Position numbers and translations under genes: made by a program. A model generated the notes under the pieces. The model ran no database searches. It was not told the DNA's origin and worked only from the letters and a program-made list of their open reading frames with translations. Positions 17,120 to 57,095 of a DNA stretch of 64,000 nucleotides are shown in pieces; within the stretch, counting starts at the first letter, position 1, and each line of letters opens with the position of its first letter. Location of the stretch: positions 124,001 to 188,000 of the forward strand of contig NIVC01000016.1 in NCBI GenBank assembly GCA_002269645.1, given 5' to 3'. Source of the DNA: Macrostomum lignano (Eukaryota).

Positions 17120-20100
17120 TTAGCTCTGATCGAGATCGCCCTGCAGGCGGTGGTATTCCCGCAGGCGGAGCGCGTTAATCCGAATGAAGCCTTCAGCGTC
17201 CCGAGGCTCATAGTTGCCCTGCACGTCCATGCTGACCAGCTCCTGGTTGTACAGACTGAACTCCGAGTCTCTGGCGGTCACGTGCACTCCGCCCTTGAAT
17301 AGAGACAGCTGCACGGTGCCGGAGACACGCTCTTGGGATCTGGTGAGCGAATAGCGGGAGAGAATCTAAGGAAACAGTCTTATATTGATTGTTACGAGCG
17401 GAACGGAATATTTAGGAAGATCTGATAACAAAAACTAAAGATTAGTCGCAGAAAGGATTGAATGTTTTTGACAGTCTATAGCCTAACGCCTGCCTTGTTA
17501 CTCTGGGAGTCTGTCAGTTCAATTCACCAATCAGTTTGGTCCCTCTGCGAGTTAGTCAAATTACTCTTCAAGTGTGCCGGGTCTTTGTAAGTCTGTCATT
17601 TTGTTCCACTAATACTTTGGTCACTACACTAACCATGATCACTCCACTAACTCATAGGTCACCTCTACAAACTCTTTGGTCACTTCACAAACTCTTTAGT
17701 CACTCCACAAACTCTTTTGGTCACTCTAAAAACTCTTTGGTCCCCCCACTAACTCTTTGGTCACTCTACTAACTCTTTGGTCACTCCACAAACTCTTTGG
17801 TCCCCCCACTAACTCTTTGGTCACTCCACAAACTCTTTGGTCCCCCCACTAACTCTTTGGTCACTCCACAAACTCTTTGGTCACCCCACTAACTCTTTGG
17901 TCACTCCACAAACTCTTTGGTCACTCCACAAACTCTTTAGTCACTCCACAAACTCTTTGGTCCCCCCACTAACTCTTTGGTCACTCCACAAACTCTTTGG
18001 TCCCCCCACTAACTCTTTGGTCACTCCACAAACTCTTTGGTCACTCCACAAACTCTTTAGTCACTCCACAAACTCTTTGGTCCCCCCACTAACTCTTTGG
18101 TCACTCCACAAACTCTTTGGTCCCCCCACTAACTCTTTGGTCACTCTACTAACTCTTTGGTCACTCCACAAACTCTTTGGTCACTCCACAAACTCTTTGG
18201 TCACTCTACTAACTCTTTGGTCACTCCACAAACTCTTTGGTCCCTCCACAAACTCTTTGGTCACTCCATAAACTCTTTGGTCACTCCACAAACTCTTTGG
18301 TCACTCCATAAACTCTTTGGTCACTCCATAAACTCTTTGGTCACTCCACAAACTCTTTGGTCACTCCATAAACTCTTTGGTCACCCCACTAACTCTTTGG
18401 TCACTCCACTAACTCTTTGGTCACTCCACAAACTCTTTGGTCACTCCATAAACTCTTTGGTCACCCCACTAAATCTTTGGTCACTCTACTAATCTTTTGG
18501 TCATTTATATACTAAAAATTTACTAAATGACTAAATTTACTATTAGAAAAACTTTTTTCTGCAGCTATTACAAAAATTTAAAGGATTGCTTTTAAAAAAT
18601 GAAAGATTCATAAACTTTACTTTACGTTAAAAAGGAATTTATAGTTCAAGTTGATTAACGAATGAAAAATATAGTTTGAAATTACGATAGTCCAATTATG
18701 CCAATTGAAGTAAAGTAATACAACCCCCCCCCCCGATCCACCTACCGCTTGATGCAGTCGCGCAGGAATTTACACTCGGGTGAGAACCAGAAGCCTCTGT
18801 AGACCTGCTCGCCAAAGTCCAACGCCAGCCGTTGCTTGATGCGTCGCAGCTCGCGGTCCATCGTCAGCACCTCGATGTCGATGTGAGCCTGGCGCAGGAT
18901 TGTACCAGCGGGGGTCTCGTAGACTCCGCGACTCTTCATGCCGATGAACCGGTTCTCCACGATGTCAACACGGCCGATGCCATGCTCGCCGCTGCAACGA
19001 GCCATTTCGGTTGAGGCTTTGGTCACTCAGCCGGGCAATTTGGTCACTCTACCTAGCTGTTTGGTCACTCTACCTGGCTGTTTGGTCACTCTACCGGGCT
19101 GTTTGGTCACTCTACCGGGCTGTTTGGTCACTCTACCTGGCTGTTTGGTCACTAGCTGGCTGTTTGGTCACTCTACCTGGCTGTTTGGTCACTAGCTGGC
19201 TGTTTGGTCACTAGCTGGCTGTTTGGTCACTAGCTGGCTGTTTGGTCACTAGCTGGCTGTTTGGTCACTCTACCTGGCTGTTTGGTCACTAGCTGGCTGT
19301 TTGGTCACTAGCTGGCTGTTTGGTCACTAGCTGGCTGTTTGGTCACTCTACCTGGCTGTTTGGTCACTAGCTGGCTGTTTGGTCACTCTACCTGGCTGTT
19401 TGGTCACTCTACCTGGCTGTTTGGTCACTAGCTGGCTGTTTGGTCACTCTACCTGGCTGTTTGGTCACTCTACCTGGCTGTTTGGTCCCTAGCTGGCTGT
19501 TTGGTCACTAGCTGGCTGTTTGGTTACTAGCTGGCTGTTTGGTTACTAGCTGGCTGTTTGGTCACTAGCTGGCTGTTTGGTTACTAGCTGGCTGTTTGGT
19601 CACTAGCTTTCTGTTTAGTCATTCTACTGGGCCAATTTACTCTGTGTGGCTCTGCTTACGATGGGAGTCTGTTTGCCTCTCATCTGTATCAGCAAGCCTT
19701 TCCAAGTACAATTCTGCACAAAGAAACAAAGCCACGAACCCAATCTTGTTCAAGTAGGTGTACAGCTCCAGACTGCCTGTGATCTCCTCTCCCGTAGTCA
19801 GGTTTGTCACCTTCACCGGGATACCCTGCTCGAAGCGGATGGAAATCCTGGCGGCCTGATCGGGCGCCTCAGCTGGGCTCTTCGTCATCGTGCAGAGGTC
19901 CTGCGGCGCCTCCACCTTCGGGTCCTCCAGAATTCCCGACTCGTAGCTGGTCAGGTCAGGGTTTGGTGCGAGTTGCGGCTTATTTCTGACTGAATATTCT
20001 CTCCGGTCTTTCTCGGCTCTCTCCCTTACTTAACCTCTCCTTTCTCTCCCCTGTCTCTCTTCCTCTCCCGTCTCTCTTCCTCTCCCGTCTCCTTCTATCC

Positions 20101-27558: not shown

Positions 27559-29559
27559 TGTTAATGAGGCCAACTGTGCTGCAGTATAAATTAGCAAAAA
27601 ATCATCATTCAGTATTTTTAGCTTTGATTGCTTTATATATACAGAATATAAAAACTATTAAAACTATAGAAGACACATTCTTTTCTTTATTGTGAGGCAA
27701 ATGTAAACTTTTGAGTTATAAATTTTGATACTTTTATATAACTATTTATTGCTTAAAAATCTACAATTCTATGCATTATGAGGCTTATTATTTTAAATAA
27801 ACTATACTATAATAAAACAGAATTAGTATTTAATAGGATAGTAAGTCAAAAGGACTTCCATTTTCTTAGGCAAAGCTAACTAACCATCATAGGTATTCAA
27901 CTCGAGATAATGGCCAATAGCTGAAAGGTCATAAGGGGGGTTCTAAAATGTGATAACTTAATGCTTATAATGATTGCCAGGATGTCAAGGCTTATAGAGA
28001 AATTGCTAAAAGGTTATAGCTCTTCTAAAAGGAATTCTCTAAGATTCTAAGGCTCATGGAGGGAGTTGCTATGATTTCATGGCTTATAGGGGGGCTCAAT
28101 CCATATACTAAAATAAAATTCTAAGGCTTAAGGCTCCTGTGGGAATTGCTGCAGTATAAATCAAGATCTAATATATTAGGCTAGATAGTTGGCTATTAGG
28201 GCAGATAATATTTTGCTTTAAATATCATTTTTTTAAAATCAACCATAGTGAATAAAGGTCAAAATCTATATTAGTTAGTTGTCTCCTAAATTAGGGGTGC
28301 AAATAGCCAATGTGAAGTATACGAGCTTTATATATTAAAATTATAACTATAGTATTTAATATTAGACACAATTTTGCATTTCTATTTTATTTCTTTATTT
28401 TTTATCTTATGTCTTATAGCACTTACTCTTGTCTTACTTTTCTTAACTCTTAAGACCCAATCTTGAATTTTAGGAAATTATAAAAAGTTGACTTCCAATT
28501 TATCTATTAAGATGAGGACTGAGATTATAATTAGACTAACTAATATTGCTGTAGGCTTATAGAATCAAACAAAGAATTATATTATGAGTCAAACATTTAT
28601 CATTGGCATTAAACTAATTTGTTTATATATTTTAGTATTATAGTTTTTAATTATAGATTTAGAATTAAATATTTTAATAATAGTTTATAATTTCTATAAA
28701 ATAGACTCTATAATCTATAAAATAGGGTTATTATAGTATAAGCCTAGTATAAGCCTAGTATATATGACTGTTGCAAAATCTAGGCCTAGCCCTAAGGCTG
28801 ATATTAGCAAAATACAAGTGTTATTAGGTGATAGCCAATAGAACAAAAAATCATAAATGTCTTATTCCAACTGCCTATTCCAGATATTATCATTTTTAAT
28901 GTAACTTATAAGTCTAAAGTACTATACAATAAAATGTATTAATTTAGGATGGGTGTCCCAAAAGTTATCAGAATCATTGCTTTAGCTCCCCAGTACCTTG
29001 ACCAACTTTTATGTTTTATATGTCAAACTAAAGATATTTCTTCAATGAAAAAATTGTCATTTGAATTTCCTTTCTATCTTGTTTTGGTTTTGGATTAGGC
29101 TATTAGGTATGGAGAAATGGAGAAAATTTTTCTATGGAGAAAACTCATCTAGAAACTTTAGCCAAAAGCAAGCACTTGGTATGGTTGTATAGAATAAGCA
29201 AGTGTTAGCACCATTATATATAATTAGCAATTTTACTGGTTTCATCCATAGACATTTCCACATCTTTCTGACAAATTCAAACTTGAATTTTGCAAAAAAT
29301 GATAATAGAAAAATGACATCACAGACATTCAAGGTTGTGTAACACTAGTTGCCATACATGCGCAACAGTCGGCCGAGTCGGCCGATCCGGCCGACCGATT
29401 TGGCGGCCAACCAAGTAAGTCGCAAAATTGATTAACCGCCAAAAAAAACGAAAAAACAAAAGACGAAAAAGGGGAAAGGAAAAGGAAAAAACGAAAAAAA
29501 GGGAGCAAAGAGAAAGAGAAAAACACAAAAAGAGTTGTAAGTGCTGTAAGTTGCAGCAC

Positions 29560-31330
29560 TGAAGACAAGGTAAGTCGCACCGAGGGCGAGCTAAGTCGCA
29601 CCGAGGGCAAGCTAAGTCGCAGCAGGACCGAGCTAAGTCGCATCGAGGGCGAGCTAAGTCGCACCGAGGGCAAAATAAGTCGCACCGAGCGAGAGCTAAG
29701 TCGCACTAAGTCGCAGCAGGACCGAGCTAAGTCGCACCGAGGGCGAGCTAAGTCGCAGCAGGACCGAGCTAAGTCGCACCGAGGGCGAACTAAGTCGCAG
29801 CAGGACCGAGCTAAGTCGCATCGAGGGCGAGCTAAGTCGCACCGAGGGCGAGCTAAGTCGCAGCAGGACCGAGCTAAGTCGCACCGAGGGCGAACTAAGT
29901 CGCACCGAGCGAGAGCTAAGTCGCACTAAGTCGCAGCAGGACCAAGCTAAGTCGCACCGAGGGCGAGCTAAGTTGCAGCAGGACCGAGCTAAGTCGCACC
30001 GAGGGCGAACTAAGTCGCACCGAGCGAGAGCTAAGTCGCACTGAGGGCGAGCTATGTCGCAGCAGGACCGAGCTAAGTCGCACTAAGGGCGAGCTAAGTC
30101 GCACCGAGGGCAAAATAAGTCGCACCGAGCGAGAGCTAAGTCGCAGTAAGTCGCAGCAGGACCGAGCTAAGTCGCACCGAGGGCGAGCTAAGTCGCAGCA
30201 GGACCGAGCTAAGTCGCACCGAGGGCGAGCTAAGTTGCAGCAGGACCGAGCTAAGTCGCACCGAGGGCGAACTAAGTCGCACCGAGCGAGAGCTAAGTCG
30301 CACTGAGGGCGAGCTATGTCGCAGCAGGACCGAGCTAAGTCGCACTAAGGGCGAGCTAAGTCGCACCGAGGGCAAAATAAGTCGCACCGAGCGAGAGCTA
30401 AGTCGCAGTAAGTCGCAGCAGGACCGAGCTAAGTCGCACCGAGGGCGAGCTAAGTCGCAGCAGGACCGAGCTAAGTCGCACCGAGGGCGAACTAAGTCGC
30501 ACCGAGCGAGAGCTAAGTCGCACTAAGTCGCAGCAGGACCAAGCTAAGTCGCACCGAGGGCGAGCTAAGTTGCAGCAGGACCGAGCTAAGTCGCACCGAG
30601 GGCGAACTAAGTCGCACCGAGCGAGAGCTAAGTCGCACTGAGGGCGAGCTATGTCGCAGCAGGACCGAGCTAAGTCGCACTAAGGGCGAGCTAAGTCGCA
30701 CCGAGGGCAAAATAAGTCGCAACGAGCGAGAGCTAAGTCGCAGTAAGTCGCAGCAGGACCGAGCTAAGTCGGACCGAGGGCGAGCTAAGTCGCAGCAGGA
30801 CCGAGCTAAGTCGCACCGAGGGCGAACTAAGTCGCACCGAGCGAGAGCTAAGTCGCACTAAGTCGCAGCAGGACCGAGCTAAGTCGCACCGAGGGCGAGC
30901 TAAGTCGCACCGAGCGAGAGCTAAGTCGCACCGAGGGCGAGCTAAGTCGCAGCAGGACCGAGCTAAGTCGCATCGAGGGCGAACTAAGTCGCACCGAGCG
31001 AGAGCTAAGTCGCACTAAGTCGCAGCAGGACCGAGCTAAGTCGCACCGAGGGCGAGCTAAGTCGCACCGAGCGAGAGCTAAGTCGCACCGAGGGCGAGCT
31101 AAGTCGCAGCAGGACCGAGCTAAGTCGCATCGAGGGCGAACTAAGTCGCACCGAGCGAGAGCTAAGTCGCACTAAGTTGCAGCAGGACCGAGCTAAGTCG
31201 CACCGAGGGCGAGCTAAGTCGCACCGAGCGAGAGCTAAGTCGCACTGAGGGCGAGCTAAGTCGCAGCAGGACCGAGTAAGTCGCAGCAGGGCCGAGGTAA
31301 GTCGCAGCAGGATTGAGTTAAGTCGCAGAG
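29560..31330. repeat. Subterminal 21-bp modular minisatellite with ~220-bp higher-order repeats, inside the hAT element
   Basis: Modules CGAGGGCGAGCTAAGTCGCAC, AGCAGGACCGAGCTAAGTCGC and CGAGCGAGAGCTAAGTCGCAC. Identical blocks recur at 29696, 29916 and 30136 (220-bp spacing). Confidence 0.97.
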
Positions 31331-31665
31331 CATCTTTAGGATTATTAGGATAGGATTAGTTTAGGATGAATTTAATGTATCACTTACTAGGGTGTAGGCT
31401 ACGTGTGCATTAACGCATCAATTTGAAAAATTAAGAATTACGAAGCCAGAAATGGCTAAGGAATAGAATAACTTATAAGCAGTAATTTTTCAGCCCTATT
31501 ACAATTGCAAATCATACTTTTAATAATATTTAATTAGCAAATTAAAACTGCAAGATTCTAACGGTCTTATATATGAACTTAGAAGAACTGTAGTCTTAAT
31601 GATTATGCATGTACCATTGTAATAATTGATTAAAATTGTAGCAGATTAAAACTGATAAAAAACTT

Positions 31666-34600
31666 TCAAAATAGTCCACTTAGCAAATCAGAATCAGAAT
31701 CTTTAATTTCCTCGTCTACGTTGGATTCTTTTTGCCGTTGACCTCCAGGAGCATCAGAACGCCAGTGTTTTTTCAGCCAATCATTGACATAAATATCCGG
31801 CTTAAATTTCATCAGCGGAGGCCCATTTATTCGAATCCGTAGTAGATGCTCCAATGTTTTTGGTGCCAAGCGTGTTCTCCTGTCATAGGCAATGTGCTTA
31901 TAGATAGAAAACCCTCTTTCAGCCTCAGCTGATGATATTGGCAAAGTTAACACAACCATAATTAGATTCTTTATTCTGGGCAGCCATTCAACAGTTCTTG
32001 TCTCTAGAAAGTGATAGAAAGTGACTCCAAAATTTCACCGGACCTTTGCCTTTGTAGGCACAGAAGTCAACACTATGCGAAGTGATCAAACTTTTTAGGA
32101 GTAGACCGAACTGACCAGAGATTGTCCTTTCTGTAGCGCGTTCTGAAGCATCTGCATCTCTAGAGTCTGAATCAGAAAGATGGTCCTCTGTTTCAGATTC
32201 AGAGCTGTCATCTTCCATTCCAAACCGTCTAGCAAGAGGTATGATTCTCGAACTGTATGTAAAGACAGTATGTAATGTTTCAGCATTAGGCAATAACACT
32301 GGGTTGAGCACATTAAATATTGAGTAGTCATCCTCAGGAAAATAATTACGCAGCTGATCAATTATGCTATCAATGATTCGACTGCGAATCTCATCCAGTG
32401 CTGGATAAGCTCCCATGTCAACAACACTGCCACGTCCACTAGCATCAAATAATCTATTTCTTAGAGATCTGTCTGCAGCAGAACCTGGTTGCTTCAACTC
32501 AAACCTCTCTGTTGGATCGCTGCTTCCAGGGCCGGAAGGACAAGCAAAGTTAGAATAAGATAGGTCTCTTGTGTGACATCCTGAATGGTATTCCAGCTGC
32601 GGATATCCATCTGCAGTTCCCAAAACTCGACGACACTTGCAGGAAGCCAAAAAGTCCACAATGCGAGGACCATTGTTCGTTTTTAAGGTTTCTAGTGAAT
32701 GGATAAGGTTAGTGTGGCGTTCTTGCAAGCCAATAAATGTACCCTTGGCTCTTTGAAACTGCAAGGACTCAAATTCCAGTAATTTTAGAATGTCCATGAG
32801 AAATAGATGTAATGAATAATACCGGACATTTTGCAATGTTTTCAATAATCCAGAGGCAGTTGCTTTACTTTCGTCATCAAAGCCTGAGGAAGGTGATTTG
32901 ATATTTTCTAAATTTGTCAGAAGCAAGTAGTACGACTTTCGAATCACATCAAGAGCAGACACTTCCGATGCAACCCACCTGATGCGATATATTCTTTTTA
33001 ATTCATAGAAAACCAAGTTGAGTGCTTCCGAAGTTTGTGCCAAAGATGCCTTACGTTTAACAGTGTGGCTCATATAAAATTTGTGTAGAGAATTTATATT
33101 CTTATCGAGATGTTGCATAAATGGGAAGATTTCAAAGGCATGATAGATTGAAAGTTCTAACTTATGCGCTGCACAATGGTGCTGAAAAAATTGTTTGCTA
33201 GCCCAAGGCCTCAGTTGACTTATTAATCCCACTCGACTTCCTGTCATTACGGATGCACCATCAGTTGTCACCCCCCATAGCCTTCGTTTGATTTCATCTT
33301 CTAGCTTGTCATCCGAAAATAAACGGATGAGAAGTTCATAAATGCTTCGTCCAGTCTCTACTTCAGTCAGACGTTTAAACCGATAAAAAAACATCAAAGG
33401 TTGGCTGTTTTCAAGAACTCTGAAGTATATCATGACGTAGCTGTTTGAATGAATATCAGACGTTGTATCTAGTACAATAGAAATCGGAAGATTGTCAGCA
33501 CTTTTAATGTAATTCACAAATGTCCGATGCATTGTATTACTGATTGATTCCACCATTGCTGCGGCACTTTTGCGATGCTTATGATGGCTCCCCATATCCA
33601 ACCCATTTTTTACTTGTAAATCAATCATATTTGGATGAGCACTGAATGGAATATTAGATTTGACTTCGGCATAAACTGTTGTCAAAACTCGGGCTGTTAT
33701 TTCATCTCGTTTAGTTTTAGCTAGTCTAGCGGCCTCATTCATCTGTTTGAGTTGCTTTGCAAGAACTGAAGTATGTTTTTCCTTCATCCACTTTATGGCG
33801 TCACTGTAAAGTGTATTTGATGAATGTTCCTGTAGTTTTCTTCGTACGCTATCTTTTGCATGACCTTTGGGAATGTAGCCTTGTTCTGTTGCAAAAGTTA
33901 ACTTACGTTGGCTCTCTAGATTTGTCTCCTTTTTCTTATGTGCATTCAAAAATTTTCTGCAGATCCGACATTGTATTCCAGATCTTGATAGATCTTCGGT
34001 GTTTTGAACATATTGAAACCATGTCTTCATTTCTTGTGACACAAATTTTCTTGAAAATGATCTGCAATGGTCAAATTAGAGAATATTTTGGGATTTGGAC
34101 TATTTGTGAGTATCTAAAAGCAATATGCTAATAAGTGCAATACACAGTACACTATACATTAATTTACAGTTCGTCAGTTTCCATTTACTTACTGTGACTG
34201 GTGCATCTCCAAAGAATGTAACCACTCCTCTCAAAAACCAGATGTATCCTCCCAGTCCTTTTTAGGGAAAACTTCAATATTTTCGCCCATCATAGAGGAA
34301 GACGAGGGCTTTGATGCTGAAGTGGCTAGACATGCGTCTGCAGATGTGCTTATGCATGGTATTTTTTTTTGCGATGGCCCTGCTTCTGCAGTATTTACTT
34401 GTACTATTTCAACATCACCTGAACCCCTTGAGTCGCTCGAATCTAAATCAACAATAGGACTTTGGCAAAGTGATCGTTTCGTTGATTGTCTTTGAATATT
34501 TACTTGCCTAATAATTTCCACTTGTAGTTTGCTTGTTTGCTGGTCATTCTCCAACAACTCTCTTCTTTCCTGTACATTTGCAGCAGAGCAAAAATTAGAA

Positions 34601-35820
34601 GTTTCTGCAGCAGCAGTTTGAACAGCATGATCTCGATTAGCTGCTATTTGCTCTGAAAATTCATAGGACCTGGCCAATTCACTACGGTGTGAGCTTTCAG
34701 AACATGGAGCTGGAGCAAGAGCTAGTCGCATTTCGATTCTTTCTGTTGCTGATGAAGCAGATGCTAATGCTGAGTCTGCCAATGTACCTGCTTCTCTTGA
34801 AGGTGTATTTATGATGGCTTCAATATTGTCCTCTAAAATCCAATGAGCACCTGAGCAGTCATTTTCTCTACCTGGAGTCAACTGTCCAAGTTTCCACCTT
34901 GTAAAAAGCAAAGGCTTTCGTAACTCACTGCCGGATTCAGGGCACCGGTTTATTGAATAGTCCTCATGACCAAGTTCATCCCATTCTCTTGCTGGCTTTA
35001 AGATGTAGTTGGGCTTGTCTCTTAGCCTACGATAAATGGACTAAAAAAATGTGCACCTGTTATTTTGCGTACTTCGTGCATAGATGATCATGTAATGCAC
35101 ATTGTTCCTAATAATTTCAGCTAATGAGTTATCAATGATAATTTTATCTTCATAAACAGGTCTTCTTTGTGTTGCATGCATTTTAGCTAGTCGCAGTTTT
35201 CCAATGCTACTGGCAGTTGTGGAACTTGAACTGTCCGATTCTGATCTAGAAAAGTCTCGTTGATACAAGAGAATAATGGCCATAGCACTTTTACCATTCC
35301 CATTCTTTAATGCATTTGGTTCTGTTGGAATTGTCTTACTAGCAGACTTGAAAAAATCAATGATGGATGACTGCGATGATCCACTAGGAGCGGAACTTGG
35401 CAGCCCATGTCTAGTTTTTCCCTGATACCCAATAGATGTATCGGTAAAAAACATATCTGCTGCTTCCTGCTTCTCTTTTGATGCAATAACAAAGAAACTG
35501 CTGTCCGTTTTGAAGCCCGAGGACCGATAGAAGTCAGCAGAAAATGAAACCACAGGTCGTCTAAAATCGCCGCTATATTCTTGAACTCCAATCAGAAGAA
35601 AATCACGGAGTCTCACTGGCACTGATCCTAATAGCATTGCAGTTGTGGAACAAACTTTCTTCAGCTCAATGAACTCTGAAAATTCTTGAGATCCAATATT
35701 AGGCTCATCAGTATTTAACTCATTTATAACAATTGAGCACTCACTCTCAGCTAGAATACCATTGATAGCTAGGATGCCACTTAGAATCAGTAGGCAAAGA
35801 CAACTAAGGCTGTACATCAT
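31666..35820 (-). pseudogene. hAT transposase (ZNF862/KIAA1586-like) with an in-frame N-terminal signal peptide and lamin-tail-like domain; disrupted
   Basis: hAT catalytic motifs IVLDTTSD, TTDGASVMTG, HCAAHKLEL, RW and SSAEAERGFS are present. The frame runs from ATG 35820 across TAG (35041-35043), TGA (34231-34233), a GT-AG intron (34192-34062) and a 10-bp duplication frameshift (32005-32024). Confidence 0.85.
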
Positions 35821-38171
35821 TCTGTGAAAGATTAAGTCGAGTATATGATTTTGGTGATAAAATAAAATTGATTTATGAGTATTACTATATAAATAAAACA
35901 TTTAAAAGCCCTTACCTTTACCAATTCATGTACAGAAAGTAAGTGTAAATACAACCAATTGCCTTGGTAGTTTAGTTATATGCTCGTATCAGATGCAGGC
36001 AGACAGCATAGGCTGCCAAGGTGCTATAAGTTAAGGTTAACTTTCACTATTTGGCTTTACAGACTGCTTTTATCGCTGCATGCATTGACTTAGCCTTAGC
36101 TTGTGCCATCATACTCATACAGCTATATATACATATGTATCTCTGCCACTCCCCACTTTTGCAACCTTACACTGTACAATCATGCCTAAAACACTCCGTG
36201 TCAAGTGTACTGTTCTAGTGCCACATGGGGTACAAATACGATTAGGAATGACAAGAATCAAAACCATACATGCACAATAGTTGGCCGATATGGACGACTG
36301 ATTTGGCGGCCAACCAAGGTAAGTTGCAAAAATGCCCACCCAAATAAATACCAAAGTAGTATTAAGTAGCTGACGAAGCATTTTGCCTTAATAAAGACAG
36401 TCATAGTTACTCCTGCCGTTTACCCAAAGTTGCGTTAATTTTGCTTTTAGGTTTTTTTCATGTAAGTCGCATTTTTGGCCGAAAACTACGTCGCATTTTT
36501 GTTAAAACTAAGTCGCACGGCCGACCAAATTTTGGAGGTTGCGCATGTATGCTAGTTGCTAACCTTCCTTTATATTTCCTGGTATAATTCAAAACAGAAA
36601 CAAGATAGAAAGGAAATTCAAATGACAATTTTTTTCATTGAAAAAATTATTTTTAGTTTGACACAAAACATAAAAATTGGTCAAGGTACTGAGGAGCTAG
36701 AGCAAAGATTCTAAGAACTTTTGGGACACCTCTTGTATATTGATTAACTATGTATATCATGTCTATATCTTGAAACATTTAAAAAAACAATGTGTTAAAG
36801 AAACCAAAAGCAAAACAAAATAGCAAAGCCAAAAGTAGGCCTAGCAGTAATTGTTTAAATAGGCCTAGGCCCTAAGTCAATATGGTATTCCTTCAATTTA
36901 TGATTATTTTGTCACTTATATTTTGGTTCATAACCCTATATCATTTTCTATTTTAGTGATCACGGCTTGTTCAAAAGAAGCAATTTTTTAACTAGGCTTG
37001 TTCATTTTACTAGAAAACTAAATGAATTAGCCATTTCCCATGGCATGGCATTTACAAAGATCTTATATATATGCACTATGGTTTATGATCATTCAAACAG
37101 TAGAAATATATAAATGTTTATGAACCAAAGATCCTAAACCAACTAAGATAACTGTCATATAACAATTGTCAACATAGTTATACTTTGCTATATTCAGTTG
37201 TTTTAGAGTTCATAAGCAGCTATATAAAAATATAGAACTAGAAGTTTGACACAAATTGCTTTTTGTAGCTTTATTCTATTGATTATGGTTCAAAAGTCAC
37301 AAGTGCTTAAATTTCAAAAAACATGATAAATAGGACCTTACTGTGGAATAACCCAAATGATTATAAACCAAAAACAAAGTGGATATATAGGATTGTCTTC
37401 ATTGAACAGTTCTAGAATATGAAATGATATAGGCCTAATAAAAAACTTTTACTTTCAGTTCACCAAACTGAATTTATTGGATCCTTTTTATCAAATAGTT
37501 ATATCTATATAAACATCTCTATTTTATATTATTCTGGTTAGCATTGCCATTTGATTGTTTGATAACAAAAATAAAAAGGATTTAAATGATTTAAGATTAG
37601 GGGCCTATTAGTTTGAAATGATTAAAACTACTTCTTTGTTATCTTTCTTATGAGGATCTTTACCAATTTTAGGGACTATAAGTATAAAACCAAAGGAATG
37701 GCATCAATGCTATCTAGACTAGAACAATGAGAGCTAGTTCTTATAAATTTATTTGAACTTTGAAATTCTATCTATTATTTAACTTCATAAGATCATAAGA
37801 CTAAATAGGCCTATTATTATTATATAAATACTATATTGCCTTGGCATAATAAAGGCAACATGGTAGCATACACTATCTATATACCTGGATGGAATTCTTG
37901 CAGAAAAATCATAATGCGTTATGCGATTGCGCGAAAAAAAATCGATTTTGCATCAAAAAATCCAGAAAAAATGTGACACAAAATTTTAGACAAAATTGCT
38001 AATTCTTAATATATGCAAAAGTGTGCTTGAGATATTGGATTTTGCAAAAGATAATCCTACTAGCTAAGATCACGAAAAAAAAAAATAAAAACTAAAAACT
38101 AAATAAGGCACAAAAGTAAAATTTCAAAAAAATTCTCTAAAAAGTAGAAACTCATAACATTCTCTAACATA

Positions 38172-39490
38172 CGAGGGGTGATCAAAAAGTTCTGCAACCT
38201 CTTGTTATAGCTTTTAGGTATAGAATCGGCAAAATCCCAAAACTTATACATATGTGGCTATATCTGTTTGCTATATTTATATGCATTTTTGGCTTCCAAA
38301 TGTGCTCCAGTCAAATTTCACAGCCATATATTTTCCATGTGTTTTTGGTAGCTGATGGAAACATCAAAAGACAGTGTTCGCTTCTACATCTTTATGCGCA
38401 TGCAACTTGGCTGCTGAGCGACTGAGATTCATACCGATCTAGTGAATGTTTTAGCTGACTCTGCTCCATCATTTGACACAGTTGCCCGCTGGCTGCGCCA
38501 TTTCTCGGAAGGCCGGGACAGCTTCAACGATGAACCAAGGTCTGGCCGACTCCGGACATCCGTGACCGAAGATGTTGTGGCCCGTGCCGATGCAATAATT
38601 CGTGAGGATTGGAGCATTATGCTGAGATTCCTTGTCTATGAGCTTGGTGTCAGCCATGGGAGTGCTCATAACATTATGCATGAGCAACTAGGCCGCACAA
38701 AGACCTGCGCTTGGTGGGTACCCCATCTTCTCACTCCGGAGCAGCAAGCAGAGAGGGTGCGTATCTGTCGCTTTCGGCTGCAAATGTTTGAGCCCCACGG
38801 CCCACGACGACTGTCGGATGTCATCACAAGAGACGAATGTTGGATCTCCTTCTTTACCATGAAGGATAAGCAGTCCAACATGGTCTGGCTGGCAGAAGAT
38901 GAGCCAAGGCTTGAGGTGCTGAAGACCGGATTCCGCAGTCGGAAGCGGATGTTCACCATTTTTTTTCAACTCTCAGGGTGTTGTATCGGTGAACATCCTT
39001 CTAGCGGGTGCCACAGTGACTGCCAGGTACTACACAGACACTGCTCTGCCAGGCGTGCTGCAGGAGTGGCAGGGACGTGCGCGAACCAGGCATGGACCTC
39101 GACTCCTGCTGCACCATGACAATGCGGCACAGCACAGAGCGGCCTCAACCATGGCGTACCTGGAGCAGCAAGGGGTCCAGCTGCTGCCCCATCCACCTTA
39201 CTCTCTAGACCTAGTACCCTGTGACTTTTGGCTGTTCCCGAGGATCAAATCCGTCATTTTTGGGAGGCTGTTTTCACGCATACAATACCTTGCCCAAGCG
39301 GTACATTCAGCTCTACAGGGTATACCAACTTCGGAGTACCATGACTGCTTTCGGACATGGTGCACACGCATGCGACAGTGTATAGATGGTGGTGGAAAGT
39401 ACTTTGAGGGAATGTGACATTGACTAGACGCCTCGGCTGCTGTAACACTGACTTGTGAGGTCACTTGCAGAACTTTTTGATCACCCCTCG
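38172..39490 (+). mobile_element. Mariner (DD34D) transposon, 1319 bp
   Basis: Perfect 26-bp TIRs CGAGGGGTGATCAAAAAGTTCTGCAA; TA TSD on both sides. Confidence 0.97.
38355..39417 (+). pseudogene. Mariner transposase, inactivated
   Basis: Motifs WVPHLL, TRDECW, LHHDNA, PHPPYSLDLVPCDFWLF and GKYF. Premature TGA at 38415-38417 and a +1 frameshift in the T8 run at 38959-38966. Confidence 0.95.
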
Positions 39491-40870
39491 TACATATTTG
39501 GACGGAAAAATTGAAGTCACTATATTTTCTTAGAATTCATTTTTTGTTATTGTCTTACTGATTACTTTATTTATTATTCATTGACCATTAATGAAGCTTT
39601 TATAGGTTCAGGCAGTTGCTAACCCATTAAAAAACTTGTTTTTACCATTTTGTGACGTGCTAAGTACCAAAAAAAATGCAACCAATAAAAAATATTTTGC
39701 GCGCCATAAAAAATTGCATAATTCTGTTTGACTTAAGAAATACAAGAATTCCATCCTGGTCTATATATAATAGTAGTAGGCCTATGATTTATGAAAGTTT
39801 GAGTTATAACTTATATTATTAGGCCTAAAGGCCTAGTGCCAACACTCAATAGATTTTTAATTGACTTTATCAATTAATTAACTACACAGTATTAGCAATG
39901 TGATTTAATTGAGGACTAGGGCCTAGCCCCACAGTAAGTACTAGACCTAGACCTAGGCAAGGGCCTATATCATTAATGTAGGCCAAGGGCCTAGGCCTAT
40001 GCTCTATTATTATTGAAATTCTACCCTCGCCCTAATGTTGTTAGGCTAACAACATTAAGCTACATTAAGCTAATGTTGTTAATGCTGTTAAACATTAAGC
40101 TAAGGCCTAATGTTGAAGGAATTTTATTAATAAGCCCTCCACTAAAAAGATACATCATTCACAGAAGTGAACTGAATTAATGCATGACCACAAACTACGA
40201 GTGTAAGTATAGCCATGCAAAATTATGACATGGGAGTTGAGCCATAAAACAACAAGCAGACAATCAGCTGATACATCTGGCGCCACTTATACTATATGGG
40301 CCTAAGTTGTATTGTAGGGCCTAGTGTAACATATATAGTGTACACTGTAAGGCCAAAATGTGACAAGTAAATTTTTTAAAGAATTAAATAAGAAACAGAG
40401 TTATATAGAATAATATATATAGACAATATATACCGTGCTTATAAATCCAGACATAGAAATGAGAGCTTATGATTGTCTTTTCTCTGGTTGTCATGCTCAA
40501 GATGGAGCAAAACAAAGACGGATGTGTGCACAACTAAACACTCCGTAAACCGGTACTGCGTTACAAAAATTGAGGTGGTAAAACAAAAAAAACACTGTAT
40601 CACAAACTTTAAATAAAAAACTGCCAAAAGTAACATTTTTAATTTTAAAAACAAGGAGTTCTAAAATTTTAATTTGTTTGGCATTTAATAAGTGCTTTCT
40701 ATAATGAACTCTTTTTTGTCCTTTGGTTTAAATTTTGCTGAATATTAGGTCCAATTTAAGTACCATGACAACAAGAGCCAAGGCTCCTGGGATATAGGCT
40801 TGACGTTCGTTCTCAGAAGGTCGGATCAGATGATTTCTTTGGGTGGTAAAAACTACAATACAACATACAA

Positions 40871-40933: not shown

Positions 40934-43355
40934 ATGTAGCAAGTGAACTCCTACAATTCTGCCAAGTCAGCGTTGAAACTTATATGGGAAAACTGCAAAT
41001 TTTCCGGAGCAGGCTTTGGGCTATTTTAATTTTTAATTTTCCAATTTTAACATCCCCAAAAAAGCAGAAAACTGCTTTTTAAACCCCCAATAACCTTCTT
41101 TGGCCACTCTGCCTGGGGCTGCAGCCAGTTTGTAAAAATAGCCACCCCAACCTCCGCCCGCGGGCCGCTGTGTATTGAGGGGTGGTGGGTGCGCGTGTTC
41201 TGCGTTCAATGCAAATAAAACCCCCCGCGTGTTGGGGGGCTGAGTTAAATTTAATGCTTCCCCCAGAACGGGGGTTGGGCTTGGGCTGAGTGTACATAGC
41301 AGTTGTACAGTGTAAACAGATAGACTGTGTCGAGATTCATTTGGTTTTATTATTGGCGCCTTTTTTCTATAGGCAGCCCTGTGTATTAGTTTGGCAGTGA
41401 AATTCAATGAATTGCGAGCTTCTCTAGCAAGCAGTCGGGAAATCGGTAAATTTCAAACGCTACTAACTGTTCCTTGAGTTTTAAACTTTGAGAGGAGAGA
41501 CTTATATTGCTGGAAAGATCTTGCAACGCTGAGTTTAGGGATATAAGTTGTTTGCTTTAAATATGAAAAGAAAAAGCACCGCATTTAAAAAACTATTTCC
41601 ATACTTTTAACTTTCTGCAAAAATTGTACTCAGTTTTGCGTGACGTAATAGATAAAGTTGGGGGGAGGGTTCAGCTTCTCACTGCTGCTGTGTATTGGAG
41701 GGTTGATTTAGATTGCGCAATGTTTTTGTTAACTTTGACTGAGACTGATACTGACTGACTGTGAAATCGGTTGCGCAATGAATTGATTCAATTAGTTCAA
41801 TATTTTTATCAGTGCCTTTTAACACGAAGCTGTGCGTAGTTCGAACCCTAACCCTAACCCTAACCCTAACCAATGAATCCGGAGAGTTGAGTTGTTTGAC
41901 GGAAAAAATTCGATTGAGTCCAGTTTAGCGGAGACGATTTCAATGTTTTAATTTTGACGGAGGAGATAATTAATGATTGATTTCTGTTTTATGGAGACGA
42001 TTTTGATGGATTTAAGTTTCAAGGAGAGGATTTCGAAGGAGATCCAGTTTCACGGAGAGGATTTCGATGGTTTTCAGTTGCACGGACAGGATTTCTGCTT
42101 CGCGGAGAAAATCTTGATAGATTTGGCATCTTCAATCAGTCAGAGAAGAGAGTAAAGAGAAGAATGAAAAGAGAAGAGAGATGAGATGATAGAAAACAGA
42201 GTAGAAATGAGTGGAGAAATTAGACATGACAGATGGGAGAGAAGAGGGGAGTAAGGCGGGAACGAAGGAGAGAGAAGAGAAGAGGAGAGAGGAGATGAAG
42301 GGAGAGGATATGAGAGAGGAGATATGAGATAGCAGAGAGGAGACAGGAGAGAGAAGAAAGGAGGGATAAGAGCGTACAGAGGCAATAGAAGAGAGGAAAG
42401 AGAGGAGAGAGGTGAGAGGTGAGAGGAGAGAGATGAAAGATCAGAGATCAGAGATTTAAGAGAAGAAAGTAGTGAGGAGAAAGAAGAGGGTAAAGATGAG
42501 AGTGCAGAGAGGAGAGAAACGAGAGGAGACAGGTAGTAGAAAGGAGTGTAAAAAACAGGAGATAAGAAAGGAGAGGGTGAGTGTGAGAGCATATAGGAAA
42601 GTGTAAAAGGGAGCAGAGGAGAGAGAATAGATAAGTGAGTAGAGAAGAGATATGAGGGAGGAGAGATTAGAGATTAGAGAAGAGATGAGAGGAGATAAGA
42701 GGAGAGAAGAGAGAATGGAGAGGAGAGAAAAGAGAGGAGAGGAGACAGGTGATGCAGTAGAAAGGAGGGAAGAAAGATGGTAGATAAGAAAGGAGAGGGT
42801 GAGAGCGTATAAGAGATACGAGAAATGAGAGCAGAGAGAAGAGAGAAAAGGGAAGAGAGAAAGTAGAGCGAAGACGATAGATAAGTGAGTAGAGATGAGA
42901 TATGAGTGAGGAGAGAAAAAGGGAGAGATAAGAGAGAAGATAGGAGAGTAGACAGGAGAGGGTATAGACGAAAGACGAGGGAGAAGAGATAAATAAGGGA
43001 GTAGAGATGAGAAAAGAGAGAGAAGAGATAAGCGAGAAGAGTAGGAATAGAGGAGAGAGAGAGAGAAGCGAGAGAAGGGAGAGAGGAGGGAGAAGAGAGA
43101 TGAAATATCAGAGATGAGAGAGATGAAAGAGTGGAGAGGAGTAATTAGTGAGGAGAAAGAAGAGAGTAAAAATAAAAATCAGAGCGCAGGGCGCAAGAGA
43201 TGAGAGATGGGAGTTGATAGATTGTAGAGGATTTGGAGATGATTTGGAAGATGAGATTCAAGTCATGGAATTTCAGCTGATGGGAGTTCTTCCCCTTCAG
43301 AATTCCGGTGATGGGAGTTCTTCCCCTTTCTCCTCCAGAGGAGGAGTTCCACTCG
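40871..43355 (+). mobile_element. Non-autonomous Helitron-like unit Z (diverged relative of A and B)
   Basis: A|TC start followed by an AT-rich leader and (CTGT)n; shares GCCACCCCAACCTCCGCCCGC with A and B; AG-rich core; 3' hairpin CTCCTCC-AGA-GGAGGAG 9 nt before terminal CTCG. Confidence 0.7.
41844..41871. repeat. Short telomere-type repeat (AACCCT)4.5 inside Helitron-like unit Z
   Basis: AACCCTAACCCTAACCCTAACCCTAACC. Confidence 0.85.
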
Positions 43356-45934
<2,579 letters not shown>

Positions 45935-47474
45935 TCTCTAACTATAAAAATCAAAACTCTGTCTGTGTGTCTGTCTGTCTGTGTGTCTGTGGACAATTTT
46001 GATCGCTATGGACTCCCAAACCGCTCAACCAAATGACACCAAACTTTACACCCACCCTAAACTTACTACGGAGAATGTCTTAGGCTACCTTTTAATTTCC
46101 TAGACTCAAGTCTTCCTACCTAAAAGTACAAAAAACTGCTCAAAATGCGCGATTTTTTCACTAAATCCTCCATAGCGCCGCTCCACTTCTACCGATTCTC
46201 TTCAAATTTGACACAGGCAATTTTCAACTATTTTGACACAATCGTGTAAAATTTCAAATCTCAAAGTTAATCCTGAAAGCCGCTGTGCACTTTTAAAGTT
46301 AGGCTGTTTTTTTCAGCGAGGCAGCCACCCCAACCTCCGCCCGCCTGCCTCTCTTTTCCGATCTGGGCAAAGGGTGTGAATAGGTTTTAAAATGCCTAAC
46401 TTTTGGCTGCCATAGTTTTGCTCCACGTGAAGCGATTGACTTCAAATTTGACACAATTCTTTATTGACTCATTCTCTGCCTACATGTAAAGTCTCAACTC
46501 TGTATCTCAATCAGGACAGAAACTGTAAGCATGTGAAGTTTGTCTGCTTTTTCTGTTGTTTGCCGCTCATCCAACTCATTCCCCAGACGAAGGGTCAGGC
46601 GATAGGGCTCAATGTACATAGCGAATGTACAGTGTTTTGGAATAACTTTTTAATAGCCTTCTCTGTACCCCCGCGAGTGGAGAGGCGTGGAGAGGAGAGA
46701 GTTTAGTGAGAGATTCAATTTCAAACCACTGTCCTCTGAATAGACAAGTCTGCAGCAGTTAAACAGGGATGGCAAATCAAGGCGATGTGGGATGGTTTGT
46801 AAAAATATCGAAAAATTAATGAATAACTGATTACAATGCAATCCTACTAAATTAGTTACACCATGAAAATTTTAACATTAGGATTCGCATAAGGTACTTT
46901 AAAATTTAAATGGCCTCCTAAGAAATGCATATTTCCATGGTTGTTAGACTGCTGCAGACTGTTGTGTTGGAGCTGGAGATATACAAATTTCTCTCAGGGC
47001 TGCTAATTGACCAGAAAGATGACGTGATTAAAGCATGAGAAATGATAACAACCATGATAGTACTACGTCCCACAAACTGGCTTTCGAAGCAGGGATCGGC
47101 AGATTTTTATCTCAAAGGCCAGATAAAGAATCCAGCTCATGGCTATGGGCCAGATGAGAGTGGAAAGGAGAAGGAAAAGACTGTTGGAAAGAGAGGAGGG
47201 GCAAGAGAGAGGGGAATAAGAGAAATGATAGAAGATAACAAGAGATATGAGGGGTGAGGAGAGAGCAGAGAATATGCGAGGAAAAAGCGAGACGAGGGGA
47301 GAGAGGAAAGAGTAGAGGTGAGAAGAGGGAGAGAGAAGAGGGGAGAGATAAGACAGGATCGATGAGAGAGGAGAGTAGAGAAGAGTGAGATGAGAGTAGA
47401 GATGAGAGGATCGAGAGGAGAGATTAGAAAGGATCAAGGAGAGGAGATAAGAGGGGGAAGAGGGGGAGAGGAGT

Positions 47475-47546
<72 letters not shown>

Positions 47547-48800
47547 GAGAAAGAAGAGAGGAGAAAGGAGAGATGATAGAGTAAAGAGAAGAGAAGGAGA
47601 GAGGAAAGATATGAGATTGTAGAGATGAGAGATTAAGGAATACACAGCAGGGTGCAGAGAGACGAGAGAAGAGAATAGAGGGGAGAGAGTATAGAAGAGG
47701 GGAGAGAGGAGAGGAGTAAGGAAAGAGAAGTCAGAAGAGGGGAAAGAGAAGAGTACACAGGAGAGAGGGGAGTAGAGATGACAGAAGAGAGAGAGGGGAA
47801 TGAGAGAGCAAAGATGAGAATGAACAGACGATATATGAGAGGAGAGAAGTGGAGAGGGAAGAGAGAAGACAAAAGAGGGAGAGAGTATAGAAGAGAGAAG
47901 AGAAGAGACGAGAAGAGAGAAGAAAGGAGAGAGAGTCCTGAGTCAAAAAGGGGAAAGAGAAGAGTACAAGAGGAGAGAGGTGAGAGAACATATGAGAGTA
48001 AAGATGACAGATGAGAGAGGGGAGATGCGAGAGCAGAAACGAGAGTAAAAAGGCGAGAGATGGGAGAGTAGAGAGAAAAGAGGAGAGATAAGAAATAAGA
48101 TATGAGTGGAGACAAGGGAGAGATGAGAAGTGAGTGAGGAGAGAGGAGGGGAGGGGAGAGAATCGAGAGGACAGCGGAAATTGGTGAAAAGGATGAGAGA
48201 GGAGAGGAAAGAGGGGAGAGATTAGAGAGATGGAGGAGAGAGCAGAGATATGTGAGGAGAGAGAGCAGAGAGAAATGAAAAAAGACAGGAGAGAAGATAA
48301 AGGAAGAGAAAGGAGAGATAAGAGAGCAAAGACGAGAGAGAAGAGAGTTGAGGGAAGAGACGATAAGAGAGATGAGAGGAGAGAGAAAAGAATAGAGGGG
48401 AGAGGGAAGAGACGAGAGAAGAGGGGAGAGAGGAGAGAGGAGAGAAAAAGAAGAGATGAGAAAAGAAGAGACGAGACGAGAGACGAGAGAGAAGAGACGA
48501 GAGAGAAGATAGGAAACAGAAGAGAAAATAGAAGTTGCAAAGGATGCAAGGGACATTAGGGAGAGGCAGTGGCAGAGGCCAGAGTTTGCCTGACACTCTG
48601 TGTAGCATCCCAGCCAATATCAATATCAATGCTTGCTTCAAATGTCCTAATTTTACACAAATGTATATATTTTATGTTTAACTCTATCCAACTATTAACA
48701 AGTTTTTGTTTGAGTTTGACTCCGATTTTAGAATGCATGCAAAAATAATTCCGGGGAATAGAGTTCCCCAGGTTCAAAATCCGCGGGTTTCAACAGCTTG
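45935..48800 (+). mobile_element. Non-autonomous Helitron-like unit B (diverged paralog of A), head-to-tail with A
   Basis: Junction CTTG|TCTCTAACTATAAAAA; collinear with A along its length with many substitutions; same 3' end CCGCGGGTTTCAACAGCTTG|T. Confidence 0.82.
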
Positions 48801-48815
48801 TATACTATAATACAA

Positions 48816-51381
<2,566 letters not shown>

Positions 51382-52507
51382 TGATTATATGCAGATCTCA
51401 AATTTTATGATTCATACCATGACACTTGACGTACACTGTAAATGTACATACAGTATTCATGGACACTGATAAGCAAATTCTTAATTGAAAAAAATACAAA
51501 ATTGATGACAGCGACAGGCAATTTGCAATGGCAACTATTTACATGCCCTTTGAACAATAGTCAGCCCACCCAGTCCCAGATCGGACACATTCCAATGCAA
51601 AAACGTAGATTTCATTTCTACATGTATCAGATACGAGAATAATACAATTATGTGACCCTTTTGTTTGGAGTGCAATAAATGCGAGTTAATCTAGTATTTT
51701 TTAAATAACAAATAATATTGGTTAGTTATTGAGCCAGAATCTCGAGTTTATTGACGCATGAGGAAAAATCAATTCCGCGCACAACAGATTTACCGCGGCA
51801 AAACGGCCTAAAAGAACAGCATTAATTGAAGTACAATAAAGTCAATTAAAAATTTACGCTGCATTTGACCTGTAGCATTATTGCACTGGCGACCTAAGGC
51901 CTAGTTGCATGATCGAATCAATATGCTGGTCCATACAGAGCATATCCGCAATCACCGAATCTCCAGGGCCTGCGGGGCTGGAGCCCTGGATTTACTGCTG
52001 ACGCCAGGCCGCGCCCTGCCCAACAGGTTTAGTAGCAGAGGAAATTTGATTCAAAGCGGAGTTATAGAGATGCCAAAGCCCAATCTAATCAATCGCAAAG
52101 TCTGCTTGTCTTTCGGCAATACTGAAATAAGAGCCAAGCAGTTTCTTCTGATTGCTTTCGAAGAAATATCCCATTACCGCGAATCGATCCTCTGTTTTTA
52201 TCAAATACGAACGTTTTTTCAGGTTTGGATTATGTATAATTTATGCCTGACTTTCATAAGTATGTCACCACAAACTACGCCTCTGGCTAGATGAGTCTCT
52301 GGTCCAAACCTCAAAAATGCTTGCAGATCCCCGCCCGGGGGAGCATTTGGTCCGACAGAACAGCTGACGGCTTCAGTGCAAGTCTCTCTAGCTGGTTCAT
52401 ACGCCATCAAACGTCCGCAACAGACAGAAACAACACAAAAAATGACATTCCAGAGGCAGTGAACAGTCTGTGATTTGAAATCTAACTAACAAAAGAGCAC
52501 CTCAATT

Positions 52508-55665: not shown

Positions 55666-56169
55666 TTTGTTATCCGCCGTGAATTCGCCCAGAAACTGCT
55701 GCAGTTATTTTTACAGCATTCGACGGTGGAAGGCGCGCAGCAGTGAAACGGCAGTTTATGCATGTATAATTGAAATCTTTGGCAGAGCAAACTGCCAATG
55801 CAGAATTTGGTGAGGGCGGGGGGCACCGTTTAAAAACGAGCGCAGAGAGTTATTTATTTGCACTGGGCATCGTAGCGACACTGTTACAGCAGAACCTGGC
55901 CGCTTTCGCCATCCGGATGCTTTTGCTGCAACTTTGGTTGCTGTGCAAAGAGGCAGGGGGGAGCTGCAGCTGCATCATTTGATACTCGTACAGGAGGGCA
56001 GTTGAATCGCAAAATTTTTGATAAAAATTTTCATATTTAAAAATTTTGATGGCAGAAATATTAAGCAATGAATATATAGGCTTGTCAATTTACACAAAGT
56101 CAGTCCGTGTTCTGTTGGGCTTGGGGTGGCCTCTGACCATCGATCGTTCGCGCAAATGGAGCCACGTCT

Positions 56170-57010: not shown

Positions 57011-57095
57011 GCCATTTCTATTATCCCATCTGGCGCTATATCTTTATCAACCTGGCACCAACCGCAATCAATCAAAGCCAATTCGAATCCATCGT

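Follow-up and report, generated by a model that had tools for sequence, protein, structure and literature searches.

A hAT transposon of Macrostomum lignano whose transposase carries a signal-peptide-like start and a predicted lamin-tail domain

The 64,000-nucleotide stretch of Macrostomum lignano DNA analysed here (assembly GCA_002269645.1, contig NIVC01000016.1, positions 124,001 to 188,000 of the forward strand; hereafter the window, whose own numbering is used throughout) contains, at 29353–36551, what is very probably a dead copy of an autonomous M. lignano hAT cut-and-paste transposon. Its single minus-strand gene would natively have had two exons and specified a protein of ~1,310–1,340 residues, in which a signal-peptide-like start, a lamin-tail domain (LTD), a low-complexity linker, a basic cluster and a W-containing motif precede a zinc finger, the hAT DDE core and the hAT dimerisation domain. 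The fusion of signal-peptide-like start, LTD and transposase is ancestral, widespread and under selection.

A two-exon transposase gene in a decayed hAT element

The original prediction joined three minus-strand open reading frames (ORFs) into one frame by reading through a TAG and a TGA and removing a canonical intron, and its coordinates and features are as claimed. ORF 35901–35041, which ends in the TAG (35043–35041), and ORF 34911–34231, which ends in the TGA (34233–34231), share one frame. Exon 1 runs up to the donor CA/GTAAGT and has its last base at 34193; exon 2 opens at 34061, behind the acceptor TTGCAG/, and exon 1 is thereby joined to the frame of ORF 34042–31988. The 131-nt phase-2 GT-AG intron between them (34062–34192) has the same position and phase in an intact M. 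lignano element, L007 (104 nt, removed in PAA51197.1), and in L005. The joined junction ...EEWLHSLEMHQSQ/SFSRKFVSQEMKTWFQYV (HQSQ before the junction) matches, residue for residue, the uninterrupted ORFs of P0004 and P0009 and the annotated spliced protein P0049, so the exon join is no accident of frames. Upstream of the start codon, GT...AG motifs (GTAAGG...CACAG) mark a putative intron in the 5′ untranslated region at 35822–35915.

With its lesions masked the coding sequence runs to 1,337 codons and holds two internal stops in AT-rich DNA. Both stops are private to the window copy. The TAG (35041–35043, codon 260) falls inside the LTD where relatives have Glu (FFESIY in P0001 and P0049), and the TGA (34231–34233, codon 530) replaces a CGA (Arg) present in the copies L002 and L006, which read ...GGTTTTCGAGAGGAG... 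at this point. A third lesion had been missed: a private 10-bp tandem duplication, TCACTTTCTA, at 32005–32014 shifts the frame before the hAT dimerisation domain (ORF 31959–31666). It is absent in L006 and in P0043 (...FWSHFLETRTVEWLP...), and the truncated end that it creates, ...SLSRDKNC, is also found in an annotated M. lignano protein, P0036.

The architecture is intact elsewhere in M. lignano. The L007 element (NIVC01003487.1) belongs to a subfamily whose protein is 68% identical to that of the window copy. It has an exon 1 open for 543 codons and an exon 2 open for 775 codons, and its locus is annotated in GenBank as one 1,313-residue protein (PAA51197.1) with neither stop. Transcript models derived from RNA-seq underlie the M. 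lignano annotation (PMC5730564), so this entry is indirect evidence for the existence of a spliced mRNA.

A profile of the N-terminal domain, searched against 1.84 billion representative proteins, gave 287 matches at E ≤ 0.001, and a further word-indexed homologue search with the family alignment gave 10 proteins. The N-terminal domain and the hAT part occur together in 30 of the 158 N-domain proteins collected. Outside M. lignano the complete order (signal peptide, N-domain, linker, zinc finger, hAT) is present in at least 28 further clusters at 50% identity, several as uninterrupted ORFs. Uninterrupted or annotated fusions include P0009, P0054, P0056, P0061, P0065, P0088, P0107, P0109, P0111 and P0140, among others, many being single ORFs of 1,000–1,250 residues. 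The upstream domain is still fused in distant relatives at ~30–45% identity. These data bear out the ancestral fusion that had been proposed for this locus: its relatives keep the upstream ORF, and other copies lack the stop at 34231.

Numerous matches of 350–400 residues consist of the N-domain only, and these stop inside the conserved W-E-T-T-x-x-F motif. At the one such locus examined, L008, a 362-residue N-domain ORF is followed by a 95-nt GT-AG intron and then by an in-phase hAT ORF of 700 residues. Such matches are thus first exons and not separate genes. Directly downstream on the same Logan contig, which carries another LTD-hAT element, lies the gag-pol region of a long-terminal-repeat retrotransposon (L008 4290–7072), from which we take the contig to come from a repeat-rich eukaryotic genome.

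The limits of the element were set by alignment to the paralogous copy L006 (M. lignano NIVC01002610.1). The two are 97.4% identical from 36551 down to 30804 and remain alignable through a tandem array to 29353, giving an element length of 7,199 bp, and the gene lies on the minus strand. Homology ends exactly at terminal inverted repeats (TIRs) on both sides, and the flanking DNA differs. Read on the minus strand, the 5′ TIR (36538–36551) is CATACATGCGCAAC and the 3′ TIR (29353–29366) is GTTGCGCATGTATG, a perfect 14-nt inverted repeat. Outside them lie identical 8-bp target-site duplications (TSDs), CTAGTTGC, at 36552–36559 on the gene-proximal side and at 29345–29352 on the other. L006 is flanked on both sides by CTTGGGTT and the L007 element by TAACATCC. 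TIRs at the limits of homology together with an 8-bp flanking duplication are the canonical hAT cut-and-paste signature, and the element moved by this mechanism. Copies at non-homologous sites are numerous: clustering the hAT part at 90% groups 18 members, spread over at least 15 contigs of M. lignano, and the hAT half of the window copy is 98% identical to the M. lignano protein cluster.

These results dispose of three other accounts at the window locus, namely that the upstream ORFs are separate cargo, that they align in frame with the transposase by chance, or that a single-copy host gene has arisen here by domestication. Two stops and an intron do separate the parts in the window copy, and many database matches do have the N-domain only. 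The fusion is nevertheless uninterrupted in distant relatives and annotated intact in M. lignano, the N-domain-only matches end at an intron with the hAT exon next to it, and the TIRs, the TSDs and the many copies scattered over different sites are at odds with domestication. We regard the chance that any of the three is correct as negligible.

A longer inverted repeat (28952–29097 and 36585–36730, 148–160 nt) was considered for the TIRs of the element and rejected: it has no TSD, it lies outside the homology between copies, and the true 14-nt TIRs are internal to it. The two copies, 89% identical over 148 nt, sit just outside the hAT and would be ~290 bp apart if the hAT were removed. The element was therefore apparently inserted into an older foldback or MITE-like structure (MITE, miniature inverted-repeat transposable element).

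Two further features lie inside the element. Between the transposase gene and the 3′ TIR, a 1.8-kb internal minisatellite (29571–31328, minus strand; TRF) repeats the 21-bp unit CTAAGTCGCACCGAGGGCGAG ~84 times. L006 and L007 carry this array too, at ~68% identity in L007; it is conserved but variable in length. Its core, TAAGTCGCA, recurs three times beside the 5′ TIR, and 90 of the 100 plus-strand GTCGCA sites in the window are inside the hAT element. By comparison with the subterminal repeats of other hATs, the 21-bp repeats may be transposase-binding sites. The 5′ subterminal region (36265–36551, 287 bp, minus strand) has the organisation of a MITE belonging to this family: it holds the 5′ TIR, three TAAGTCGCA-like motifs and a degenerate internal sequence at 36265 resembling the 3′ end. 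A solo 297-bp MITE copy, 89.9% identical, is found at L007 15122–15418, between TSDs of its own (TCCAGAAA, 8 bp) and 220 bp away from the intact element.

Exon 2 (31666–34061, minus strand) encodes the zinc finger, the RNase-H-like catalytic core and the hAT dimerisation domain. The DNA-binding region at the N-terminus of the transposase starts with a C-x2-C...H finger (CRICRKFLNAH, 33938–33970). This pattern is conserved in the family, and the Pfam zf-BED match is below threshold (E = 0.4). Dimer_Tnp_hAT (PF05699) is matched at E = 1.4e-7 (31.6 bits versus a cut-off of 21.4) and aligns with Hermes residues 455–505. Hermes is the only PDB sequence match to the transposase, and the N-terminal part of the alignment is weak. 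Candidate DDE residues lie in ISIVLD (33484–33455), TTDGAS (33271–33251) and AEAERGFS (31935–31906), all on the minus strand, which align with the regions of Hermes D180, D248 and E572. Near-identical M. lignano hAT proteins carry PF27073 (FAM200-ZBED5_RNase-like, precomputed) and PF05699, while distant relatives named ZNF862-like or KIAA1586-like carry PF27073 and PF14291 and have no LTD. From these domain assignments the core appears to belong to the ZNF862/FAM200-ZBED5-like branch of hATs; ZNF862 itself is listed as a hAT-derived gene (PMC3257199).

The four TSDs seen contain no central TA and match the Ac pattern partially, but four sites are too few to assign a subfamily. For comparison, Arensburger et al. 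are said to have given, in 2011, the TSD consensus nnnTAnnn for Buster and nTnnnnAn for Ac.

A divergent lamin-tail domain under strong constraint

The N-terminal domain occupies residues 25–337 (34810–35748, minus strand). In the window copy it has the motifs C-S-IVINELNTD, EFIEL, FFVIAS, NGNGKSAMAIILL, VH.MIIYARS..NRCTFF, SINRCP and WKLG.LTPGRENDC. The family profile matches a 1,693-residue amphioxus protein, P0075 (Branchiostoma floridae LOC118427361, XP_035693005.1; UniRef C3ZWX4 'LTD domain-containing protein'), at E = 1.1e-26. In P0075, Pfam recognises eight LTD domains (E = 7.5e-95); the protein also has a signal peptide and, at its C-terminus, a transmembrane segment. When 26 N-domains were compared with its eight repeats (hhalign), the profiles aligned with 99.6% probability (E = 1.8e-24) over 181 of the 181 repeat columns. 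Profile and profile–profile comparison thus identify the transposon N-domain as, most plausibly, one divergent LTD expanded by insertions. Three of its cysteines (C232, C269 and C298) are invariant or nearly so, and most members have a fourth at the N-terminus of the domain.

The two proteins share the motif order VINE.N.D...EFIEL...FF.IGS...NG..A..L...VD..VYS...S..RC...F....TPG..N.C over the 181-residue repeat, and both start with a signal peptide. The transposon protein differs in having one LTD rather than eight, ~100–130 inserted residues, two further conserved cysteines and a transposase in place of the transmembrane anchor; the Pfam model misses its LTD. The original prediction had called the domain bacterial-type. 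Since the nearest recognisable LTDs are the repeats of an animal membrane protein, this label is unsupported; the profile search brought out no bacterial LTD as a specific relative.

Direct searches were less favourable, and they count against the LTD assignment. Pfam gave no family at E ≤ 1 for the reconstructed N-terminal 543 residues, and its LTD model no match at E ≤ 0.01 for P0049, P0056, P0078, P0081, P0088 or P0140. The LTD model matched two of the 26 family members, the better at E = 0.017 and below the gathering score. In structure comparison, a Foldseek search of the N-domain model against the PDB returned nothing at E ≤ 0.001 and listed no lamin tail, its best matches being generic Ig/VHH domains (E ~0.01, TM 0.18–0.35). 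The lamin-tail reading of the original prediction is thus supported by profile comparison and not confirmed directly by Pfam or Foldseek. LTD is nonetheless the sole Pfam family that more than one of the 26 members matches, albeit weakly.

The model used was obtained with AF2 from the 26-sequence alignment (pLDDT 78, pTM 0.82), is confident and is built mostly of strands, its three or four helices falling within insertions; an earlier run with seven sequences was unusable (pLDDT 48). Against BFVD, a set of predicted viral protein structures, Foldseek found nothing significant. Searches of PDB sequences with the 7- and 26-sequence profiles gave a Dsb oxidoreductase (E = 0.07) and FGF1 (E = 0.018), both of which we treat as chance. 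The segment VDMVVYsRrs..nrC.iFE.L... (profile positions 177–234, window ~35160–34990) weakly resembles FGF1 residues 75–134, at a non-significant level. A genuine LTD profile also misses the solved LTDs among PDB sequences, so this kind of search is uninformative here.

Comparison of the window copy with the intact L007 element gave ratios of non-synonymous to synonymous substitution rates (dN/dS) of 0.16 for the LTD, 0.40 for the linker, 0.16 for the stretch with the W-motif and zinc finger and 0.13 for the hAT core; dS between the subfamilies is 0.9–1.4, near saturation, so these values are approximate, which tempers the case for constraint. The LTD is clearly under purifying selection as strong as that on the catalytic core.

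We infer that an ancestral hAT captured the 5′ exon, with signal peptide and LTD, of an animal host's gene for a secreted or membrane LTD protein, and that this exon would have been kept because it was useful to the element.

Targeting signals and possible fates of the product

The start codon (35820) opens a signal-peptide-like N-terminus, MMYSLSCLCLLILSGILAINGILA (residues 1–24, 35749–35820, minus strand), with a maximal 9-residue Kyte–Doolittle hydrophobicity of 3.08. Members of the family have a common layout at this end: Met, often K/R, 10–15 hydrophobic residues, small or acidic residues, and then the conserved Cys. Of the 87 testable members, 72 have a hydrophobic core of signal-peptide grade (9-residue Kyte–Doolittle maximum ≥ 2.2) within the 40 residues that precede the domain; the controls gave one of 41 N-termini of hAT-only proteins and 44 of 850 random internal windows. 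The signal-peptide-like start that had been predicted for the window copy is therefore a conserved hydrophobic start of the family, as judged by this heuristic. Two points weaken its reading as a signal peptide: the measure is a hydrophobicity heuristic rather than a trained predictor, and the hydrophobic start is absent in 15 of the 87 members, some of them full-length (P0168, P0176).

No transmembrane-grade segment was found after the signal-peptide-like start, so a translocated product would be soluble. We considered a type I membrane protein with its transposase on the cytosolic or nuclear side and rejected it on the same finding.

The Ala/Ser/acidic linker (34261–34809, minus strand), likewise without a transmembrane segment, leads to the conserved motif KDWEDTSGF(R)EEWLHSLEMHQS at the end of exon 1 (34193–34260, minus strand), which contains the private TGA and reads W-E/D-x-T/S-x-x-F...W...HQ in all full-length relatives. 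A basic cluster such as PKKKRV, SERKRP or N-RRKRR-LS lies 13–40 residues upstream of this W-motif in 41 of 49 members; among control windows, 120 of 350 have one. In one subfamily N-RRKRR-LS keeps a constant spacing of 17 residues. The window copy retains a remnant, SQKKIPC (34374–34354), where P0001 has QRKRP and P0049 SERKRP. The cluster may be a nuclear localisation signal (NLS) or, in some members, a convertase site; R-x-K/R-R occurs in nine of the 49.

Of the modes of action considered, the one that we favour, though only tentatively, is a dual fate for the gene product: the signal peptide would direct one pool to the endoplasmic reticulum (ER) and secretory pathway, and the basic cluster would bring a second pool to the nucleus, where it would perform transposition. 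A switch between products could be provided in M. lignano by the phase-2 intron. Its retention would yield a protein of signal peptide, LTD and linker that ends at the donor, since the donor supplies an immediate in-frame TAA (CAG TAA), the same in three lineages (window copy, L007 and L005). Cis-splicing would yield the full fusion of signal peptide, LTD and transposase. If a spliced leader were trans-spliced onto the exon-2 acceptor, the mRNA would encode the transposase only, from MKTWF onwards. M. lignano makes frequent use of trans-splicing (PMC5730564), and MKTWF is where the annotated models P0043, P0007 and P0036 begin. Against such a switch, relatives outside Macrostomum do not conserve the Met of MKTWF, and the switch cannot apply to those relatives that have intron-free ORFs. 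The Drosophila P element offers an analogy of mode, and not of membership, in that a single retained intron would close the ORF at once and leave a protein cut down to its N-terminal part. Unlike in the P element, the truncated hAT product would be without the zinc finger and so would have no P-type repressor role.

The hydrophobic start might instead go unused as an ER signal, with the LTD serving in the nucleus as a chromatin-, lamina- or DNA-binding module or for oligomerisation, its cysteines perhaps binding zinc. Lamin LTDs act in the nucleus, where the transposase too must be, the conserved basic cluster would fit an NLS, and the 15 of 87 members without a hydrophobic start agree with such a role. 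We nevertheless consider it unlikely: 83% of members, at 30% identity, preserve the n-h-c layout between Met and domain, as against 2–5% of controls, and the nearest LTD relatives come from a membrane protein that has its own signal peptide and, at the C-terminus, a transmembrane segment.

A bolder proposal is delivery between cells. The transposase would be secreted by the cells that express it and taken up by others, such as oocytes or germline precursors; the LTD would be a binding or uptake module, and the basic cluster would serve nuclear import or release by a convertase. Protein made where the transcript escapes silencing could in this way mobilise germline copies. Signal peptides combined with NLS-like clusters are a signature of proteins exported to act in another cell's nucleus, as in parasite effectors, and the family has both (72 of 87 and 41 of 49 members). 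The product, lacking a transmembrane anchor, would be soluble and secreted, its LTD is of the extracellular, Cys-containing kind, and R-x-K/R-R is present in some members. Yet there is no evident mechanism of uptake or endosomal escape, furin-type sites occur in a minority only, and we know of no precedent among transposases for a 1,300-residue enzyme crossing two membranes. On balance we think this explanation rather improbable. It is very unlikely that we are dealing with an animal DNA-transposon family whose transposase leaves by the secretory pathway and acts in another cell's nucleus, with the LTD for uptake or binding and the basic cluster for release, import or both. If true, a cut-and-paste element would have a route, at the level of protein, into germline nuclei or neighbouring cells, and would evade transcript-level silencing there.

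Lastly, the signal peptide could be a means of self-limitation that diverts most of the product from the nucleus and keeps the dose of transposase low, the LTD being retained mainly for folding and ER exit. This would account for a signal peptide and a nuclear enzyme in one chain, and the linker does evolve faster than either domain. Theory, however, gives weak selection for self-restraint in transposons, and an LTD under a constraint equal to that of the core (dN/dS as above) would be left unexplained. We see self-limitation as a long shot.

Surroundings, related systems and significance

Other repeats are abundant in the window. A mariner-like element of 1,323 bp (38170–39492) has perfect 28-bp TIRs (TACGAGGGGTGATCAAAAAGTTCTGCAA) and two overlapping plus-strand ORFs (38442–39119 and 38989–39417), split by a frameshift, in which the mariner transposase motifs HHDNA..H and PYSLDLVPCDFWLFP occur. 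A large inverted duplication lies within 42100–51400 (43356–45935 versus 51379–48815, 98.7%), with related blocks at 74–77% identity; the ORFs of this region are Ser/Leu/Pro-rich and of low complexity. Further minisatellite arrays are located at 7545–8377, 17605–19632, 56154–57043, 57917–58746, 59311–60400 and 60658–61301. Their number is consistent with the 15% of the M. lignano genome made up of simple and tandem repeats (PMC5730564).

The window element shares with the hAT superfamily its short TIRs, 8-bp TSD, DDE core with inserted domain, dimerisation domain and C-x2-C finger. The branch concerned includes the sources of ZNF862, KIAA1586 and FAM200/ZBED5 (PF27073, PF14291, PF05699), with Hermes as the solved structural reference. 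Relative to hAT-only relatives (≤ 27% identity), the window family has ~540 extra N-terminal residues, comprising signal peptide, LTD, linker with basic cluster and the W-E-D-T motif, and the 1.8-kb internal 21-bp minisatellite sets the window element apart from other hATs. LTDs are also joined to DNA-acting enzymes in bacterial secreted nucleases (ExeM/NucH type) and to a nuclear protein in the lamins, with hallmark motifs in common; this parallel is drawn from general knowledge and not from sequence comparison. The enzyme here differs from the bacterial ones in being a DDE transposase and not of endonuclease/exonuclease/phosphatase type, and its best recognisable LTD relative is animal. Lamins, for their part, have no signal peptide.

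In the full-text literature we found no description of an LTD with a transposase or transposon, or of a hAT with a signal peptide, and database entries for proteins of the family read 'hypothetical' or 'HAT C-terminal dimerisation domain-containing' only. The element is thus an ordinary hAT with an undescribed, conserved, secretion-type N-terminal module.

To our knowledge, DNA transposases are regarded as purely nuclear, and their known accessory domains, such as BED, THAP and KRAB, are DNA-binding or regulatory. A secretion signal with an LTD of extracellular type is hard to reconcile with an enzyme that is required in the nucleus. The family is a case of a transposon that would have captured a host exon for a secreted protein and retained it over long evolutionary distances. 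It also carries a warning for annotation, because many 'secreted LTD proteins' of 350–400 residues in assemblies are transposase first exons. The fusion may point either to an unusual cell biology of the transposase (secretory routing, dual targeting or intercellular transfer) or to an unrecognised role of the LTD in the nucleus, and both alternatives are testable in M. lignano, since transgenesis and RNA interference work in this flatworm.

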